In this document: in pieces, positions 25,150-45,449 of the stretch
Numbering within the stretch: position 1 is the stretch's first letter
Layout of the letters: each line of letters opens with the position of its first letter
Source of the DNA: Paraphysomonas bandaiensis
Lineage: Eukaryota > Protista > Chrysophyceae
Length of the DNA: 64,000 bases
Direction of reading: 5' to 3'
Assembly: GCA_965644295.1 (NCBI GenBank)
Contig: CBFFRP010000209.1
Location: forward strand, 82,036 to 146,035
Translations under genes and position numbers: made by a program
The notes under the pieces: generated by a model
Seen by the model: only the letters and a program-made list of their open reading frames with translations
Databases searched by the model: none
Told to the model about the DNA's origin: nothing

Positions 25150-25620
25150 ATATATATCGCATCATACTGCAGAACTCAACAACTCAACGATACAAGAACA
25201 TAGTTAAATTCTTCTGAATAATATAGTTTATACCAGAGAATACGATTTTCATAGTGTCTGATTAGGCTCTAGATAAACACTGGAATTTATATCCAACAAT
25301 GCATTGAAAACTGTGACCCTCGTGCTTATACTATGAAGACTGTAATATATTGACTGTAAATTTATAGTGTAAATTTATGTTGACTCCAATGGGAAAGTCT
25401 ATTGCTAACAGTATTCTGTTGACCCTTTCTGAAAGGAACAATTACAAAAGCTCAACAAGTAATTATACTACTCGCATAACGTATTCACCCTGCATGAATG
25501 CAACAAAAAGTACCTTCTATACTCCTTGGTCAACGCATTACTTTCACTTAAATATAACGCACCATATTATTATTACTCACACATCGATGACACAAAAATA
25601 ATAAAGTGAGCAGAAAATTA

Positions 25621-27994
25621 TCAACTTACAAAATCTCCAATTCGCGAAGCTGGATTGCCGGCATATATCCCGCTCTCCGTAATGCTCTTAGTAACAACAC
25701 TTCCAGCTCCAACAACAACATAGTCGCATATATTCACTGGCAATATTGTTGCATTAGTACCGATAACAACATGATTTCCGATAGTTGTTCGCAGTAGCTT
25801 ATCCTCTCTATCAGATCGTTTCAAAGATATACCTATATATAAATATGTTAGGAAGAACTAACGAAATTGCACTAAATAACCTTTCATTAGATCATTCACA
25901 AATTTAGCGCCGTGTCCTACAAAACAGTCTGAACCTATTGAAACATATTCACATATAAAAGCATGACTTTGAATTCTAGTGCGGGCACCGATGGTCACAC
26001 TACTCTGAATTTCAACAAAGGGACCCACGAATACATCGTCGTAAAGTGTACATTCATATAAATTAGTGGGTTCGATAATAGTGATACCCTGTCCAACCTG
26101 ACAGTCTCGTATCTGATGCGTCAGTACCCGAACAGAAGACTGCGCCCCACAATTTTCAGGATTATGAGTAAATACAGTCAAATTCGTCGATTCGGCATTC
26201 TCATCATTTAATAATAATTCACTCTGCTGTTGTCGCTTTCCCTTGACATGCGCAGAAACATATTCTCCAGGGTTTATTGAAAAGTAAAATGCTTTCACTA
26301 CACGCACAACCTGTAGTACCTGTTGATCGGTAAGGGTAGGACACATGGGAAGCGAAAGAATTCGGTCACAACAGCTGTCGCTCATGGGAAGATGAGCTGC
26401 ACAACTCGCATAATTCTTGAAACTTTGTTGTCTATGAATAGGTACAGGGTAGTGAATGAGTGCCCCAATCTTGAATTTATTCGTCATCCACTCAAGCAAA
26501 GCATCCCTATGCTCAGTATGTATCACGAACTGGTGATATACTGGCACGCAGGCAGGGGGCACTGCAGGAAATGATATATCTTCCACACCCGTCAGACTAG
26601 TAGTGTATAGGTCTGCAATTTGCCTCCTTCGGATATTCCAGTCATTGAGATAATTGATCTTAACACCCAATACCGCCGCCTGCAACGTGTCGATTCGATA
26701 ATTAAGACCCTTACTGTCATTGTAATATTTCCGATTGGATCCATAGTTCTTTAGAAGTCGTATTGCATCCGCTAGCTTGTTGCTATCAGTGGTGCACGCA
26801 CCAGCATCTCCGTATGCTCCTAGATTCTTTCCAGGGTAGAAGGACCAACACCCAATGTCGCCAAAGGACCCGACGCATCGATCATTCCATCTAGCCCCAT
26901 GAGCATGAGCGCAGTCTTCAATAAGAAAGAGGCCTCTTCGCTGACATATGTCCACAAGTCTGTCCATGTCACAGCATATACCATACATATGAACCGCAAG
27001 AATTGCTTTAGTCCTACTGGTAATCGCCCCCTCGATGAGGTTGAGATCCAACTGATAGGAGTCATCATGATCTATTAGTACCATTCTCGCTCCGCACTTA
27101 TCGACCACCAAAGCGTCAGCTATATACGCGTTTCCTTGTAAAATCACTTCATCCCCCTCACCAACGCCTAGAGCTTCCATCGCAACAAGTAGAGCATCCG
27201 TCCCTGATGTCAACCCTACGCAGTGTTTAGTATTCACATAAGACGCCCATTTAAGTTCAAAATCCTGTACAGCAGGACCGTTGACGTAGCACGCACTATC
27301 CAGTACATCTTTTATCGCTTCATCTACCTCTGTCTTAATTATTTGATAGCTGGCTCGCAGATTCAAAAAAGGCACCGGAACTACTTCTAGTTTGTCCTAC
27401 ATACAGAAGAGGTCATACAGATGATAATGCATATATGTCAAAGTAGTACCATTGTCATGTTATCACAAGCCATAAGTTTCACATGCATCTTTTCTTCCTC
27501 AAGTTTCTCTATAATATTTTTATATTGATTATAGTCACCAATATAATCAAGTGGATCAAATGGTGTACTACATGCAGATAATAATATTGATCCAGCATCA
27601 ATAAAACGTAATTCAGCCCATTCAAGTTTTTTATGATAGAGACTATCTCCTGATTTTAATATAATCGTTTTTCTTGATATCACTGTATCAATAGTCACCT
27701 CGATACGACCCGATACACAATATAAAAGTTGATCTATAAGTAAATTAAATCAATCAAATGAAATTATTATATAAAGAATTAGATAGATATGTATGTATGT
27801 ATGCATGTATGTATGTATGTATGTATATACATACCTGTTTTATAATGTGCATGTTTTCCTCGTATACAATTCATGGGAGTCTCTGTGATGATAAAGATAC
27901 GTTGACATACAAATGGTAAATGATTGAAATTAAATGCTGTTAAATATCCACGATGATCATGATAATGATTAATATAATTAGGAGGTGATGACAT
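25621..27994 (-). CDS. Trifunctional NDP-amino-sugar biosynthesis protein: FdtA/QdtA-like cupin 3,4-ketoisomerase + DegT/FdtB PLP aminotransferase + hexapeptide-repeat N-acyltransferase; exons 27994-27835, 27733-27450, 27396-25881, 25832-25621 (723 aa)
   Basis: DHRGYL...RGKHAHYK...DYIGDY (FdtA pattern); SGTDAL, IEDCAHAHG, SFYPGKNLGAYGDAG (DegT family, PLP Lys); VFVGPFVEIQ...IGTNATILPV...GAGSVVTK...YAGNPA (LbH); three GT-AG introns keep the frame. Confidence 0.9.
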
Positions 27995-28057
27995 GATATC
28001 TTTGATATAATATCAGGATGGTTAAAGTTAAGAGTGAGTGGAGTGATATGAAGGTAC

Positions 28058-28309
28058 ATGTATGTATGTATGTATGTATGTATGTATGTATGTATGTATG
28101 TATGTATGTATGTATGTATGTATGTATGTATGTATGTATGTATGTATGTATGTATGTATGTATGTATGTATGTATGTATGTATGTATGTATGTATGTATG
28201 TATGTATGTATGTATGTATGTATGTATGTATGTATGTATGTATGTATGTATGTATGTATGTATGTATGTATGTATGTATGTATGTATGTATGTATGTATG
28301 TATGTATGT
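28058..28309. repeat. (ATGT)x63 tetranucleotide microsatellite in a divergent intergenic region
   Basis: Uninterrupted run of about 252 bp. Confidence 0.97.
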
Positions 28310-28600
28310 CTGTACATATACTGTACATATAACTTCTTACAGTGTCAAAACCAGGATTTTTATATCTAATAACAAGGAAAGAGCACATTTTGCATTTTGC
28401 AGTACAGAAGTATATAAAAACTTGGGCTTTGCACAACATGATTTTTCAGGATGTTATTTTGAAAGGCATCCACTCAAGATACTGAAAGTGAGTCAAGTGG
28501 ATGTGCAATGAAATTGCATCAAAATCATGTATCCATCCAACCTTATTATGCATGCATCCAACAACACAACAGCTAGTACAACTACAGTAGAAGTGCGACA

Positions 28601-37373: not shown

Positions 37374-40300
37374 CACACAAGGCATACGAGGCTACCAAGA
37401 AGCATAACAGCACTACACACCGACATTGCCTGATGAAACGTCATGTAGACACAGCAGTCCAGTCGCGCCAGCAATATATAGCGAAAGGTGTTTGTATATT
37501 GAATCTGATACATATGGGTTTCCAACACACAAGGTATACGAGGCTACCAAGAAGCATAACAGCACTACACACCGACACTACACACCGACATTGCCTGATG
37601 AAACGTCATGTAGACACAGCAGTCCAGTCGCGCCAGCCATACGTGTATGTAATATTGAATCTGATACATATGGGTTTCGAACACACAAGGCATACGAGGC
37701 TACCAAGAAGCATAACAGCACTACACACCGACATTGCCTGATGAAACGTCATGTAGACACAGCAGTCCAGTCGCGCCAGCCATACGTGTATGTAATATTG
37801 AATCTGATACATATGGGTTTCCAACACACAAGGCATACGAGGCTACCAAGAAGCATAACAGCACTACACACCGACATTGCCTGATGAAACGTCATGTAGA
37901 CACAGCAGTCCAGTCGCGCCAGCCATACGTGTATGTAATATTGAATCTGATACATATGGGTTTCGAACACACAAGGCATACGAGGCTACCAAGAAGCATA
38001 ACAGCACTACACACCGACATTGCCTGATGAAACGTCATGTAGACACAGCAGTCCAGTCGCGCCAGCCATACGTGTATGTAATATTGAATCTGATACATAT
38101 GGGTTTCCAACACACAAGGCATACGAGGCTACCAAGAAGCATAACAGCACTACACACCGACATTGCCTGATGAAACGTCATGTAGACACAGCAGTCCAGT
38201 CGCGCCAGCAATATATAGCGAAAGGCGTTTGTATTATGAATCTGCTACATATGGGTTTCCAACACACAAGGCATACGAGGCTACCAAGAAGCATAACAGC
38301 ACTACACACCGACATTGCCTGATGAAACGTCATGTAGACACAGCAGTCCAGTCGCGCCAGCCATACGTGTATGTAATATTGAATCTGATACATATGGGTT
38401 TCCAACACACAAGGCATACGAGGCTACCAAGAAGCATAACAGCACTACACACCGACACTACACACCGACATTGCCTGATGAAACGTCATGTAGACACAGC
38501 AGTCCAGTCGCGCCAGCCATACGTGTATGTAATATTGAATCTGATACATATGGGTTTCTAACACACAAGGCATACGAGGCTACCAAGAAGCATAACAGCA
38601 CTACACACCGACATTGCCTGATGAAACGTCATGTAGACACAGCAGTCCAGTCGCGCCAGCCATACGTGTATGTAATATTGAATCTGATACATATGGGTTT
38701 CCAACACACAAGGCATACGAGGCTACCAAGAAGCATAACAGCACTACACACCGACATTGCCTGATGAAACGTCATGTAGACACAGCAGTCCAGTCGCGCC
38801 AGCTATACGTGTATGTAATATTGAATCTGATACATATGGGTTTCGAACACACAAGGCATACGAGGCTACCAAGAAGCATAACAGCACTACACACCGACAT
38901 TGCCTGATGAAACGTCATGTAGACACAGCAGTCCAGTCGCGCCAGCCATACGTGTATGTAATATTGAATCTGATACATATGGGTTTCCAACACACAAGGC
39001 ATACGAGGCTACCAAGAAGCATAACAGCACTACACACCGACATTGCCTGATGAAACGTCATGTAGACACAGCAGTCCAGTCGCGCCAGCAATATATAGCG
39101 AAAGGCGTTTGTATTATGAATCTGATACATATGGGTTTCCAACACACAAGGCATACGAGGCTACCAAGAAGCATAACAGCACTACACACCGACATTGCCT
39201 GATGAAACGTCATGTAGACACAGCAGTCCAGTCGCGCCAGCCATACGTGTATGTAATATTGAATCTGATACATATGGGTTTCCAACACACAAGGCATACG
39301 AGGCTACCAAGAAGCATAACAGCACTACACACCGACATTGCCTGATGAAACGTCATGTAGACACAGCAGTCCAGTCGCGCCAGCCATACGTGTATGTAAT
39401 ATTGAATCTGATACATATGGGTTTCCAACACACAAGGCATACGAGGCTACCAAGAAGCATAACAGCACTACACACCGAAACTACACACCGACATTGCCTG
39501 ATGAAACGTCATGTAGACACAGCAGTCCAGTCGCGCCAGCAATATATAGCGAAAGGCGTTTGTATTATGAATCTGATACATATGGGTTTCCAACACACAA
39601 GGCATACGAGGCTACCAAGAAGCATAACAGCACTACACACCGACATTGCCTGATGAAACGTCATGTAGACACAGCAGTCCAGTCGCGCCAGCCATAGCAG
39701 GTGTATGTAATATTGAATCTGATATATATGGGTTTCCAACACACAAGGCATACGAGGCTACCAAGAAGCATAACAGCACTACACACCGACACTACACACC
39801 GACATTGCCTGATGAAACGTCATGTAGACACAGCAGTCCAGTCGCGCCAGCACATAGCGAGTGTATGTAATATTGAATCTGATACATATGGGTTTCCAAC
39901 ACACAAGGCATACGAGGCTACCAAGAAGCATAACAGCACTACACACCGACATTGCCTGATGAAACGTCATGTAGACACAGCAGTCCAGTCGCGCCAGCCA
40001 TACGTGTATGTAATATTGAATCTGATACATATGGGTTTCCAACACACAAGGCATACGAGGCTACCAAGAAGCATAACAGCACTACACACCGACACTACAC
40101 ACCGACATTGCCTGATGAAACGTCATGTAGACACAGCAGTCCAGTCGCGCCAGCAATATATAGCGAAAGGCGTTTGTATTATGAATCTGATACATATGGG
40201 TTTCCAACACACAAGGCATACGAGGCTACCAAGAAGCATAACAGCACTACACACCGACATTGCCTGATGAAACGTCATGTAGACACAGCAGTCCAGTCGC

Positions 40301-43300
40301 GCCAGCAATATATAGCGAAAGGCGTTTGTATATTGAATCTGATACATATGGGTTTCCAACACACAAGGCATACGAGGCTACCAAGAAGCATAACAGCACT
40401 ACACACCGACACTACACACCGACATTGCCTGATGAAACGTCATGTAGACACAGCAGTCCAGTCGCGCCAGCAATATATAGCGAAAGGCGTTTGTATTATG
40501 AATCTGATACATATGGGTTTCCAACACACAAGGCATACGAGGCTACCAAGAAGCATAACAGCACTACACACCGACACTACACACCGACATTGCCTGATGA
40601 AACGTCATGTAGACACAGCAGTCCAGTCGCGCCAGCCATACGTGTATGTAATATTGAATCTGATACATATGGGTTTCCAACACACAAGGCATACGAGGCT
40701 ACCAAGAAGCATAACAGCACTACACACCGACATTGCCTGATGAAACGTCATGTAGACACAGCAGTCCAGTCGCGCCAGCAATATATAGCGAAAGGCGTTT
40801 GTATATTGAATCTGATACATATGGGTTTCCAACACACAAGGCATACGAGGCTACCAAGAAGCATAACAGCACTACACACCGACACTACACACCGACATTG
40901 CCTGATGAAACGTCATGTAGACACAGCAGTCCAGTCGCGCCAGCAATATATAGCGAAAGGCGTTTGTATATTGAATCTGATACATATGGGTTTCCAACAC
41001 ACAAGGCATACGAGGCTACCAAGAAGCATAACAGCACTACACACCGACACTACACACCGACATTGCCTGATGAAACGTCATGTAGACACAGCAGTCCAGT
41101 CGCGCCAGCAATATATAGCGAAAGGCGTTTGTATTATGAATCTGATACATATGGGTTTCCAACACACAAGGCATACGAGGCTACCAAGAAGCATAACAGC
41201 ACTACACACCGACATTGCCTGATGAAACGTCATGTAGACACAGCAGTCCAGTCGCGCCAGCAATATATAGCGAAAGGCGTTTGTATTATGAATCTGATAC
41301 ATATGGGTTTCCAACACACAAGGCATACGAGGCTACCAAGAAGCATAACAGCACTACACACCGACACTACACACCGACATTGCCTGATGAAACGTCATGT
41401 AGACACAGCAGTCCAGTCGCGCCAGCAATATATAGCGAAAGGCGTTTGTATTATGAATCTGATACATATGGGTTTCCAACACACAAGGCATACGAGGCTA
41501 CCAAGAAGCATAACAGCACTACACACCGACATTGCCTGATGAAACGTCATGTAGACACAGCAGTCCAGTCGCGCCAGCAATATATAGCGAAAGGCGTTTG
41601 TATTATGAATCTGATACATATGGGTTTCCAACACACAAGGCATACGAGGCTACCAAGAAGCATAACAGCACTACACACCGACATTGCCTGATGAAACGTC
41701 ATGTAGACACAGCAGTCCAGTCGCGCCAGCAATATATAGCGAAAGGCGTTTGTATATTGAATCTGATACATATGGGTTTCCAACACACAAGGCATACGAG
41801 GCTACCAAGAAGCATAACAGCACTACACACCGACACTACACACCGACATTGCCTGATGAAACGTCATGTAGACACAGCAGTCCAGTCGCGCCAGCAATAT
41901 ATAGCGAAAGGCGTTTGTATATTGAATCTGATACATATGGGTTTCCAACACACAAGGCATACGAGGCTACCAAGAAGCATAACAGCACTACACACCGACA
42001 CTACACACCGACATTGCCTGATGAAACGTCATGTAGACACAGCAGTCCAGTCGCGCCAGCAATATATAGCGAAAGGCGTTTGTATTATGAATCTGATACA
42101 TATGGGTTTCCAACACACAAGGCATACGAGGCTACCAAGAAGCATAACAGCACTACACACCGACATTGCCTGATGAAACGTCATGTAGACACAGCAGTCC
42201 AGTCGCGCCAGCAATATATAGCGAAAGGCGTTTGTAATATCTGAATTCGTTCATATGGGTTTCCAACACACAAGGCATACGAGGCTACCAAGAAGCATAA
42301 CAGCACTACACACCGACACTACACACCGACATTGCCTGATGAAACGTCATGTAGACACAGCAGTCCAGTCGCGCCAGCAATATATAGCGAAAGGCGTTTG
42401 TATTATGAATCTGATACATATGGGTTTCCAACACACAAGGCATACGAGGCTACCAAGAAGCATAACAGCACTACACACCGACATTGCCTGATGAAACGTC
42501 ATGTAGACACAGCAGTCCAGTCGCGCCAGCAATATATAGCGAAAGGCGTTTGTATATTGAATCTGATACATATGGGTTTCCAACACACAAGGCATACGAG
42601 GCTACCAAGAAGCATAACAGCACTACACACCGACACTACACACCGACATTGCCTGATGAAACGTCATGTAGACACAGCAGTCCAGTCGCGCCAGCAATAT
42701 ATAGCGAAAGGCGTTTGTATTATGAATCTGATACATATGGGTTTCCAACACACAAGGCATACGAGGCTACCAAGAAGCATAACAGCACTACACACCGACA
42801 CTACACACCGACATTGCCTGATGAAACGTCATGTAGACACAGCAGTCCAGTCGCGCCAGCAATATATAGCGAAAGGCGTTTGTATATTGAATCTGATACA
42901 TATGGGTTTCCAACACACAAGGCATACGAGGCTACCAAGAAGCATAACAGCACTACACACCGACACTACACACCGACATTGCCTGATGAAACGTCATGTA
43001 GACACAGCAGTCCAGTCGCGCCAGCAATATATAGCGAAAGGCGTTTGTATATTGAATCTGATACATATGGGTTTCCAACACACAAGGCATACGAGGCTAC
43101 CAAGAAGCATAACAGCACTACACACCGACATTGCCTGATGAAACGTCATGTAGACACAGCAGTCCAGTCGCGCCAGCAATATATAGCGAAAGGCGTTTGT
43201 ATATTGAATCTGATACATATGGGTTTCCAACACACAAGGCATACGAGGCTACCAAGAAGCATAACAGCACTACACACCGACACTACACACCGACATTGCC

Positions 43301-45449
43301 TGATGAAACGTCATGTAGACACAGCAGTCCAGTCGCGCCAGCAATATATAGCGAAAGGCGTTTGTATTATGAATCTGATACATATGGGTTTCCAACACAC
43401 AAGGCATACGAGGCTACCAAGAAGCATAACAGCACTACACACCGACACTACACACCGACATTGCCTGATGAAACGTCATGTAGACACAGCAGTCCAGTCG
43501 CGCCAGCAATATATAGCGAAAGGCGTTTGTATATTGAATCTGATACATATGGGTTTCCAACACACAAGGCATACGAGGCTACCAAGAAGCATAACAGCAC
43601 TACACACCGACACTACACACCGACATTGCCTGATGAAACGTCATGTAGACACAGCAGTCCAGTCGCGCCAGCAATATATAGCGAAAGGCGTTTGTATTAT
43701 GAATCTGATACATATGGGTTTCCAACACACAAGGCATACGAGGCTACCAAGAAGCATAACAGCACTACACACCGACATTGCCTGATGAAACGTCATGTAG
43801 ACACAGCAGTCCAGTCGCGCCAGCAATATATAGCGAAAGGCGTTTGTATATATGAATCTGATACATATGGGTTTCCAACACACAAGGCATACGAGGCTAC
43901 CAAGAAGCATAACAGCACTACACACCGACACTACACACCGACATTGCCTGATGAAACGTCATGTAGACACAGCAGTCCAGTCGCGCCAGCAATATATAGC
44001 GAAAGGCGTTTGTATTATGAATCTGATACATATGGGTTTCCAACACACAAGGCATACGAGGCTACCAAGAAGCATAACAGCACTACACACCGACACTACA
44101 CACCGACATTGCCTGATGAAACGTCATGTAGACACAGCAGTCCAGTCGCGCCAGCAATATATAGCGAAAGGCGTTTGTATTATGAATCTGATACATATGG
44201 GTTTCCAACACACAAGGCATACGAGGCTACCAAGAAGCATAACAGCACTACACACCGACACTACACACCGACATTGCCTGATGAAACGTCATGTAGACAC
44301 AGCAGTCCAGTCGCGCCAGCAATATATAGCGAAAGGCGTTTGTATTATGAATCTGATACATATGGGTTTCCAACACACAAGGCATACGAGGCTACCAAGA
44401 AGCATAACAGCACTACACACCGACATTGCCTGATGAAACGTCATGTAGACACAGCAGTCCAGTCGCGCCAGCAATATATAGCGAAAGGCGTTTGTAATAT
44501 TGAATCTGATACATATGGGTTTCCAACACACAAGGCATACGAGGCTACCAAGAAGCATAACAGCACTACACACCGACACTACACACCGACATTGCCTGAT
44601 GAAACGTCATGTAGACACAGCAGTCCAGTCGCGCCAGCAATATATAGCGAAAGGCGTTTGTATTATGAATCTGATACATATGGGTTTCCAACACACAAGG
44701 CATACGAGGCTACCAAGAAGCATAACAGCACTACACACCGACACTACACACCGACATTGCCTGATGAAACGTCATGTAGACACAGCAGTCCAGTCGCGCC
44801 AGCAATATATAGCGAAAGGCGTTTGTATTATGAATCTGATACATATGGGTTTCCAACACACAAGGCATACGAGGCTACCAAGAAGCATAACAGCACTACA
44901 CACCGACACTACACACCGACATTGCCTGATGAAACGTCATGTAGACACAGCAGTCCAGTCGCGCCAGCAATATATAGCGAAAGGCGTTTGTATTATGAAT
45001 CTGATACATATGGGTTTCCAACACACAAGGCATACGAGGCTACCAAGAAGCATAACAGCACTACACACCGACATTGCCTGATGAAACGTCATGTAGACAC
45101 AGCAGTCCAGTCGCGCCAGCAATATATAGCGAAAGGCGTTTGTATTATGAATCTGATACATATGGGTTTCCAACACACAAGGCATACGAGGCTACCAAGA
45201 AGCATAACAGCACTACACACCGACACTACACACCGACATTGCCTGATGAAACGTCATGTAGACACAGCAGTCCAGTCGCGCCAGCAATATATAGCGAAAG
45301 GCGTTTGTATTATGAATCTGATACATATGGGTTTCCAACACACAAGGCATACGAGGCTACCAAGAAGCATAACAGCACTACACACCGACACTACACACCG
45401 ACATTGCCTGATGAAACGTCATGTAGACACAGCAGTCCAGTCGCACCAG
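37374..45449 (+). repeat. 8-kb tandem satellite, about 52 units of mainly 143/152/156/165 bp
   Basis: Unit anchored on TTGCCTGATGAAACGTCATGTAGACACAGCAGTCCAGTCGCGCCAGC; two length polymorphisms (+9-bp internal variant, +13-bp duplication CTACACACCGACA). Confidence 0.98.

Follow-up and report, generated by a model that had tools for sequence, protein, structure and literature searches.

We show that a 64,000-nucleotide (nt) stretch of the assembly of the marine protist Paraphysomonas bandaiensis, hereafter the window, carries a four-exon gene whose 723-residue product joins three enzymes of bacterial type in a single chain: an FdtA cupin, a DegT-family aminotransferase and a left-handed β-helix (LbH) acyltransferase. 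We regard the gene and its three-domain product as real with near certainty. From its domains and conserved residues, we consider it probable that the protein converts a nucleoside diphosphate (NDP)-linked 4-keto-6-deoxyglucose to NDP-Qui3NAc or NDP-Fuc3NAc, and trees point to giant viruses as the likely source of its first two domains. Coordinates are positions in the window and refer to the minus strand throughout. Handles beginning with L, P and X denote contigs, proteins and public sequencing runs, respectively, and G000:C denotes a contig of the organism's own assembly (62.6 Mb in 669 contigs), which the genome-wide profile searches cover.

A spliced, transcribed and long-resident gene

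Joining the four exons gives a 2172-nt coding sequence for 723 amino acids followed by a TGA stop. Exon 1 (27835..27994) encodes residues 1-53 plus one base and holds the N-terminal half of the FdtA cupin (Pfam FdtA 8-52, 31.7 bits), while exon 2 (27450..27733) continues to residue 148 and completes the cupin with its C-terminal half and a short linker (Pfam FdtA 56-130, 46.8 bits). Exon 3 (25881..27396; residues 149-653) encodes the aminotransferase, a second linker and the first half of the LbH domain, with Pfam matches of 355 bits to DegT and 33 bits to Hexapep; exon 4 (25621..25832; residues 654-723 and the stop codon) supplies the second half of that domain, matching Hexapep_2 at 34.7 bits and the C-terminal part of the NCBIfam NeuD/PglB/VioB family. 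The three introns, all GT..AG, measure 101 nt (27734..27834, phase 1), 53 nt (27397..27449, phase 0, between cupin and aminotransferase) and 48 nt (25833..25880, phase 1, within the LbH domain after FVNDLMKG). Their GC content of 0.20-0.34 lies below the 0.41-0.44 of exons 3 and 4, although exons 1 and 2 are AT-rich as well (0.31). The splice sites are further backed by homology, in that the FdtA profile is split across intron 1 and the hexapeptide repeats run through intron 3. GC at third codon positions also varies along the coding sequence, from 0.18 in the FdtA part to 0.43 in the DegT part and 0.29 in the linker and LbH part, with 0.50 in a neighbouring open reading frame (ORF); this contrast could reflect local composition or differing ages of the parts.

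RNA-derived contigs, some of them from cultured cells, support this model. The 2273-nt JGI transcript contig L001 aligns to the window in four blocks, colinear and 99-100% identical, whose junctions fall precisely at all three predicted introns, and adds a 33-nt 5' untranslated region (UTR) with an in-frame TGA ahead of the ATG and a 68-nt 3' UTR. At minimum, the 5' UTR thus covers 27995..28027 (the 5' end is at 28027 in L001 and at 28017 in the X1 contig) and the 3' UTR 25553..25620, as L001 and an X4 contig both end at 25553. Run X1 (organism A) yielded a single 2241-nt contig, 25576-28017, from which all three introns are gone; the three contigs of run X4 (organism B) bridge every intron; and introns 2 and 3 are crossed as well in X5, a polyA metatranscriptome of marine origin. 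Run X14, made from DNA of organism A, is unspliced and colinear with the genome. No transcript ending between domains was seen among the RNA-derived contigs, which cannot exclude minor shorter isoforms. The protein recorded from L001 (P0001) is 100% identical to residues 41-723, and its start at Met41 appears to be a gene-caller artefact, because the cupin profile matches from residue 8. A preliminary description made from the DNA letters had assembled four ORF fragments into the same 723-residue frame through the same three introns, and both the joining and the RNA contigs, with L001 and X1 spanning all three introns, uphold it. A long (CATA)n microsatellite (28058-28330) sits some 30 nt upstream of where the transcript begins, in a divergent intergenic region of about 570 nt common to this gene and a COG0523 gene.

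Two of the introns speak to the age of the gene. Intron 1, which follows H-A-H-x-x-T in phase 1, occurs at the same position and phase in contigs L175 and L011, and intron 3 has the same position in L175, whose protein is only about 55% identical; intron 2 is absent from L175. In addition, the ORFs called for two relatives, P0002 and P0004, end at precisely the site of intron 3. The two common intron positions therefore indicate that the fused gene is old and has been inherited vertically within its clade, rather than being a recent insertion or a contaminant. The viral affinity of its relatives, discussed below, might nevertheless suggest that the locus is not a host gene at all, being instead contamination from bacteria or viruses, or a giant-virus element that integrated recently. 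We rejected this explanation, and consider it hardly conceivable, on the grounds that its three spliceosomal introns are spliced out in polyA RNA, that two of these are common to other eukaryotes at about 55% protein identity, and that the locus is flanked by ordinary eukaryotic genes and repeats, with the DNA run X14 colinear across it. One of the repeats in the window is an 8-kb tandem satellite (37411-45449), in which periods of about 165, 317 and 482 nt recur with 92-94% matches and the AT skew is strong and constant.

Domains, conserved residues and the predicted pathway

Pfam mapping and PDB matches agree with the preliminary description both on the domain set, an FdtA cupin followed by DegT and a hexapeptide acyltransferase, and on its arrangement in reaction order, and the three motifs it had singled out all lie in the translated frame (RGKHAH at residues 45-50, DYIGDY at 116-121 and SFYPGKNLG at 333-341). 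The cupin occupies residues 8-128; its two exon pieces, each above the cut-off of 23 bits for PF05523, jointly span profile positions 8-130/131, and its PDB matches are FdtD (4mzu), QdtA, FdtA and WlaRA. The codons for His48-Ala49-His50 (27845..27853) fall in the RGKHAH motif, which aligns with RGFHAH of FdtA 2pa7. In alignments, His48 and His50 fall on the H-A-H of structures 2pa7 (FdtA), 7n67 and 5tpu and of FdtD, and the motif is also present in QdtA and WlaRB chains; we take these histidines to be the catalytic pair of FdtA-type isomerases.

The DegT/DnrJ/EryC1 aminotransferase (26296..27339; residues 168-515) matches PF01041 over positions 3-359/360 with an E value of 5e-106. Its predicted Schiff-base lysine for pyridoxal phosphate (PLP), Lys338 (codon 26827..26829), lies in SFYPGKNLG and is invariant in alignment A1, comprising the window protein and its relatives; it aligns to the lysine of WlaRG 5u1z, a residue that is alanine in the variant chain 5u21. 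The best PDB matches, at 230-330 bits, include the C-3 aminotransferases DesV (2oga, 3.9e-98), 7n63, QdtB (3frk, 5.7e-82), WlaRG (5u1z, 7.6e-82) and WbpE. The C-4 enzymes (perosamine synthase, ArnB and WecE-type) score 120-163 bits, about half as much as the best matches, and the domain reaches none of the NCBIfam equivalog cut-offs for C-4 aminotransferases.

A low-complexity linker (26116..26283; about residues 520-575), unconserved among relatives and with a predicted local distance difference test score (pLDDT) below 50, connects the aminotransferase to the LbH domain (25624..26115; residues 576-723). The latter is split by intron 3, with Hexapep and Hexapep_2 matches flanking the intron on both sides. 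When A2, an LbH profile built with the closest relatives, was compared with the PDB, 7s43/7s3u, FdtD (4mzu), QdtC (3fs8) and WlbB (3mqg) led, with E values of 1e-24 to 1e-19, and maltose and galactoside O-acetyltransferases and GlmU followed at about 1e-16, a lead of 3 to 8 orders of magnitude for the top group, whose members are N-acetyltransferases of 3-amino sugars. A search with the single sequence did not separate the subgroups (GlmU 2e-11, FdtD 7e-11).

Together, these features suggest a complete route in one protein. The NDP-glucose 4,6-dehydratase encoded in the genome would supply NDP-4-keto-6-deoxyglucose. The cupin would isomerise this D-sugar to the 3-keto sugar, the DegT domain would aminate C-3 with PLP and glutamate, and the C-terminal LbH domain would use acetyl-CoA to N-acetylate the 3-amino group, giving an NDP-3-acetamido-3,6-dideoxyhexose (NDP-Qui3NAc or NDP-Fuc3NAc) that would then pass to a glycosyltransferase. 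The protein is presumably cytosolic, since the cupin starts at residue 8 and leaves no signal or transit extension. It is probable that fusion protects or channels the labile 3-keto intermediate. When separate, enzymes of the FdtA and DegT families form dimers and those of the LbH class form trimers, and it is tempting to speculate that a hexamer would satisfy both kinds of symmetry together.

The dehydratase that this route would draw on is an intron-containing gene of RmlB type at G000:C281, whose best PDB matches are dTDP-glucose 4,6-dehydratases, including 6vlo, the Mimivirus enzyme (dTDP, thymidine diphosphate). FdtA is single-copy in the genome, being found in this gene alone, and DegT has one full copy, likewise in this gene, and one short fragment. 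The fragment, L181 (G000:C119:14361-14570), matches profile positions 172-232 at 32 bits within a 75-residue open frame, and may be a piece of a pseudogene or an exon of another gene. Elsewhere in the genome, a 658-residue intronless ORF (L003:1429-3405, in the G000:C239:172857-173813 region) combines an SDR epimerase/dehydratase with a TOD1/MUCI70 glycosyltransferase-like domain, another unusual fusion of sugar enzymes.

Several observations weigh against the proposed pathway or leave parts of it to prediction. The activities and the sugar product are predictions from sequence, and no NCBIfam equivalog threshold is reached by the window protein. AlphaFold models the FdtA and DegT domains with pLDDT values above 90, but its confidence in the LbH domain is low (about 50-60), owing to the shallow alignment there. 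Among the window neighbours there is no glycosyltransferase or other glycan gene, just CobW/COG0523 and AMP-binding matches. Of the RmlA- and RmlB-like genes that the preliminary description had looked to, only the second was detected: searches of the genome with RmlA (TIGR01207) and NTP_transferase (PF00483) gave no match or a single one of 22.9 bits. These searches are insensitive in so intron-rich a genome, because the expected PF00483-type GDP-mannose pyrophosphorylase was missed as well, and therefore do not decide between dTDP and uridine diphosphate (UDP) as carrier. Neither the carrier nor the gluco or galacto configuration of the product can be read from the sequence, the galacto configuration being that of FdtA and the gluco that of QdtA. 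UDP is the nucleotide on which 4-keto-6-deoxyglucose is made in eukaryotes and giant viruses, and it is a reasonable guess for the carrier here.

That no equivalog threshold is reached would also fit a different chemistry, in which the protein transfers another acyl group, modifies a hydroxyl or acts on another keto-sugar, such as a 2-acetamido derivative, so that its product is neither Qui3NAc nor Fuc3NAc. Related acyltransferases that use other acyl-CoAs are known, and the closest viral LbH gene, on contig L015, belongs to a WbpB/WbpE/WbpD-like cluster in which a Gfo/Idh/MocA oxidoreductase takes the place of FdtA, which implies that this type of LbH domain serves more than one 3-amino sugar. 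However, the His pair of the cupin is intact, and FdtA domains with an intact pair are not known to act on anything but NDP-4-keto-6-deoxyglucose; the aminotransferase is nearest to QdtB, DesV and WlaRG; and the LbH profile is nearest to dTDP-3-amino-3,6-dideoxyhexose N-acetyltransferases. We therefore regard a different chemistry as unlikely and favor synthesis of Qui3NAc or Fuc3NAc.

Distribution and giant-virus relatives

When 1.84 billion representatives were searched exhaustively with HMMER and domains were mapped on all fetched proteins, the FdtA-DegT-LbH order turned up only in the window protein, in P0002 from Mallomonas annulata (EukProt EP01041) and in P0004, for which the genomic contig L175 gives the full triple fusion when its introns are allowed for. 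P0003 is a DegT-LbH protein, and about 10 further relatives, at 55-63% identity, consist of FdtA-DegT alone and lie on contigs with eukaryotic genes (C2, PH, GRIP, CFAP58, SPRY and cullin). The best 80 bacterial and archaeal loci contain no single FdtA-DegT-LbH frame, and have separate adjacent genes or two-domain fusions instead. The large clusters of the ESM Atlas likewise show two-domain bacterial proteins only, with the caveat that at most three Pfam families are displayed per cluster, so that a 665-residue FdtA and DegT cluster could hide a third domain. A permuted fusion, LbH-FdtA-DegT, does exist in metagenomes, in P0129 and about nine further 90%-identity clusters (P0269-P0277) of 613-715 residues. 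As far as these searches reach, the reaction-order fusion is confined to a small eukaryotic clade. The gene for one permuted protein, P0274 (L177:8001-10073, on JGI contig 3300063180), has as neighbors a PIF1 helicase, a metallophosphatase and a protein kinase, together with a faint match to hAT dimerisation; this context looks non-bacterial, and the protein may be a triple fusion that arose independently a second time, in a eukaryote or large virus.

Relatives of the module are also abundant in viruses. A scan of viral contigs with the single protein gave zero matches, and an alignment-based scan of IMG/VR was needed to recover 440 viral relatives, many of them on contigs named as giant-virus metagenome-assembled genomes (GVMAGs) or longer than 100 kb. 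They occur in all kinds of arrangement (separate genes, FdtA-DegT, DegT-FdtA and DegT-LbH). Across L013 (ENA contig ERZ25070185), L015 and about 30 other IMG/VR loci, giant-virus contigs commonly have genes for FdtA, a C-3 aminotransferase and an acetyltransferase near glycosyltransferases and a 4,6-dehydratase, with a WbpB/E/D-like set in L015 instead. L013 itself, a giant-virus-like contig, is densely coding; alongside an FdtA-DegT fusion (P0121) and an RmlB-like dehydratase, it encodes glycosyltransferases, a protein kinase and TFIIB. The FdtA/FdtB-type module is thus widespread in GVMAGs.

We placed the aminotransferase domain in a tree of 66 rows, comprising 38 of the virus-plus-eukaryote group, 20 bacterial loci (every fourth one) and 8 viral sequences from outside that group, inferred with IQ-TREE under LG+C20+F+G4 PMSF, with supports given as ultrafast bootstrap/SH-aLRT; near-duplicates, the long-branched L068 and P0007, P0011 and P0015 were left out of the 38. 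In this tree, the eukaryotic sequences form a clade (99/96) that joins L013 (100/99) and then the GVMAG L015 and P0123 (95/86), all within a 38-row clade of viruses and eukaryotes that is free of bacteria (100/98). A FastTree analysis of 192 DegT domains and a quick IQ-TREE analysis of 84 agree with it. Constraining the viruses of this clade to a group of their own, apart from the eukaryotes, lowers the log-likelihood by 31.8 units and is rejected by the approximately unbiased (AU) test (p 0.022). Eukaryotes and L013 come together in the FdtA tree as well (SH-aLRT 93), inside a viral group of weak support. These results suggest that the link of the FdtA and DegT domains is to giant viruses and not to bacteria directly. 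The horizontal acquisition from bacteria proposed in the preliminary description would then hold for the ultimate origin of the enzymes, the nearest relatives of both domains being giant-viral, and its view of the fusion as going beyond known two-domain proteins stands in part, since the reaction order was found nowhere outside the clade and the three families do share a chain in some ten permuted clusters.

For the acetyltransferase domain, the LbH tree is poorly resolved and places the eukaryotic LbH domains (96) in a starred set with Bacteroidota and Cloacimonadota, with the GVMAGs L015 and L094 next. L015 has its aminotransferase gene next to its LbH gene, in the order of the fusion, and the oxidoreductase gene of the WbpB/E/D-like set comes after them. 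The hexapeptide gene of L013 was considered as a source of the third domain and rejected, as it is LpxA-like and unrelated to the LbH domain of the window protein.

We infer that the FdtA-aminotransferase core entered the ancestor of the eukaryotic clade from a giant virus, already fused, and that the acetyltransferase domain was added later at the C-terminus. A giant-virus source of the core is the most economical account and, in our view, the most likely one. Three points count against it: the AU test was framed after the tree had been seen, the Bacteroidota and Cloacimonadota are as close as the giant-virus sequences in the LbH tree, and eukaryotes are thinly sampled in the collections searched, so that transfer may instead have run from host to virus or come directly from bacteria. 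A direct transfer would have brought the genes from a bacterial O-antigen or S-layer cluster, with fusion taking place in the protist and viruses acquiring the genes separately or from the host. The bacterial type of the enzymes, the widest diversity of arrangements, which is found in bacteria, the company of the LbH domain in its starred set and the frequency of host-to-virus capture in giant viruses would all fit such a history. Nonetheless, not one bacterium falls within the 38-row DegT clade, the eukaryotes sit two supported nodes deep among viral sequences in an arrangement backed by the AU test, the FdtA tree agrees with the viral link and L013 already has the FdtA-DegT fusion, and we consider direct bacterial transfer rather doubtful. 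Returning to the giant-virus source, we offer as a tentative and broader proposal that a chrysophyte-related lineage domesticated a giant-virus pathway as a reaction-ordered assembly line, probably making UDP-linked Qui3NAc or Fuc3NAc for its own surface or scale glycans.

Meaning and comparison with known systems

Sugars of the 3-acetamido-3,6-dideoxyhexose class are considered bacterial, occurring in O-antigens and S-layers. The gene described here is eukaryotic, expressed and of long residence, and, as it covers the entire route, it predicts a sugar of this class in the glycans of protists; such a sugar would be the first of its kind in a eukaryote and might bear on virus-host recognition. 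By the same reasoning, many uncultured giant viruses would decorate their particles with these sugars. The literature we searched held no paper linking FdtA, Qui3NAc or Fuc3NAc to eukaryotes or giant viruses, and the strings FdtA, 3-amino, Qui3N and Fuc3N are not present in a review of giant-virus glycans (Chem Rev 2022, PMC9614988). The trees document a well-supported exchange of a sugar pathway between giant viruses and protist hosts, and the reaction-order fusion may provide a natural system in which to study the channelling of a labile 3-keto intermediate.

The closest functional parallels are FdtA/FdtB/FdtC of Aneurinibacillus thermoaerophilus, which make dTDP-Fuc3NAc, and QdtA/QdtB/QdtC of Thermoanaerobacterium thermosaccharolyticum, which make dTDP-Qui3NAc, with the same three families in the same reaction sequence. 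The likeness extends to the His pair and the PLP lysine, which are kept, and to PDB matches with FdtA (2pa7), QdtA (4o9e), QdtB (3frk) and QdtC (3fs8). Despite these parallels, the Fdt and Qdt systems consist of three separate bacterial proteins, whereas the window encodes a single polypeptide from an intron-bearing eukaryotic gene, and its LbH domain is of the short FdtD/WlbB type (about 150 residues), unlike the longer, LpxA-like QdtC.

Among fused enzymes, the FdtD/WxcM-like protein of Shewanella denitrificans (4mzu) unites an LbH 3-amino-sugar N-acetyltransferase with an FdtA cupin, each of which has a match in the window protein. Its architecture is two-domain, LbH-FdtA, and lacks an aminotransferase, so that the FdtA-DegT-LbH protein falls outside it. 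The metagenomic LbH-FdtA-DegT proteins (P0129 and P0269-P0277) come nearer, having all three families in one chain, but their order is permuted, with an FdtD-like unit followed by the aminotransferase, and in both the LbH and the FdtA tree P0129 is placed with bacterial sequences, apart from the eukaryotic clade.

A parallel from a protist virus is the viosamine route of Mimivirus (R141/L136/L142), which likewise comprises a 4,6-dehydratase, a DegT aminotransferase and an acetyltransferase; the Mimivirus chains 6vlo and 7mfo are among our PDB matches. That route aminates C-4 and does without FdtA, whereas the window protein pairs an FdtA domain with an aminotransferase of the C-3 type. While the enzymology itself is conventional, what sets the window protein apart from these systems is its eukaryotic setting, the fusion of its domains in reaction order and the link to giant viruses.

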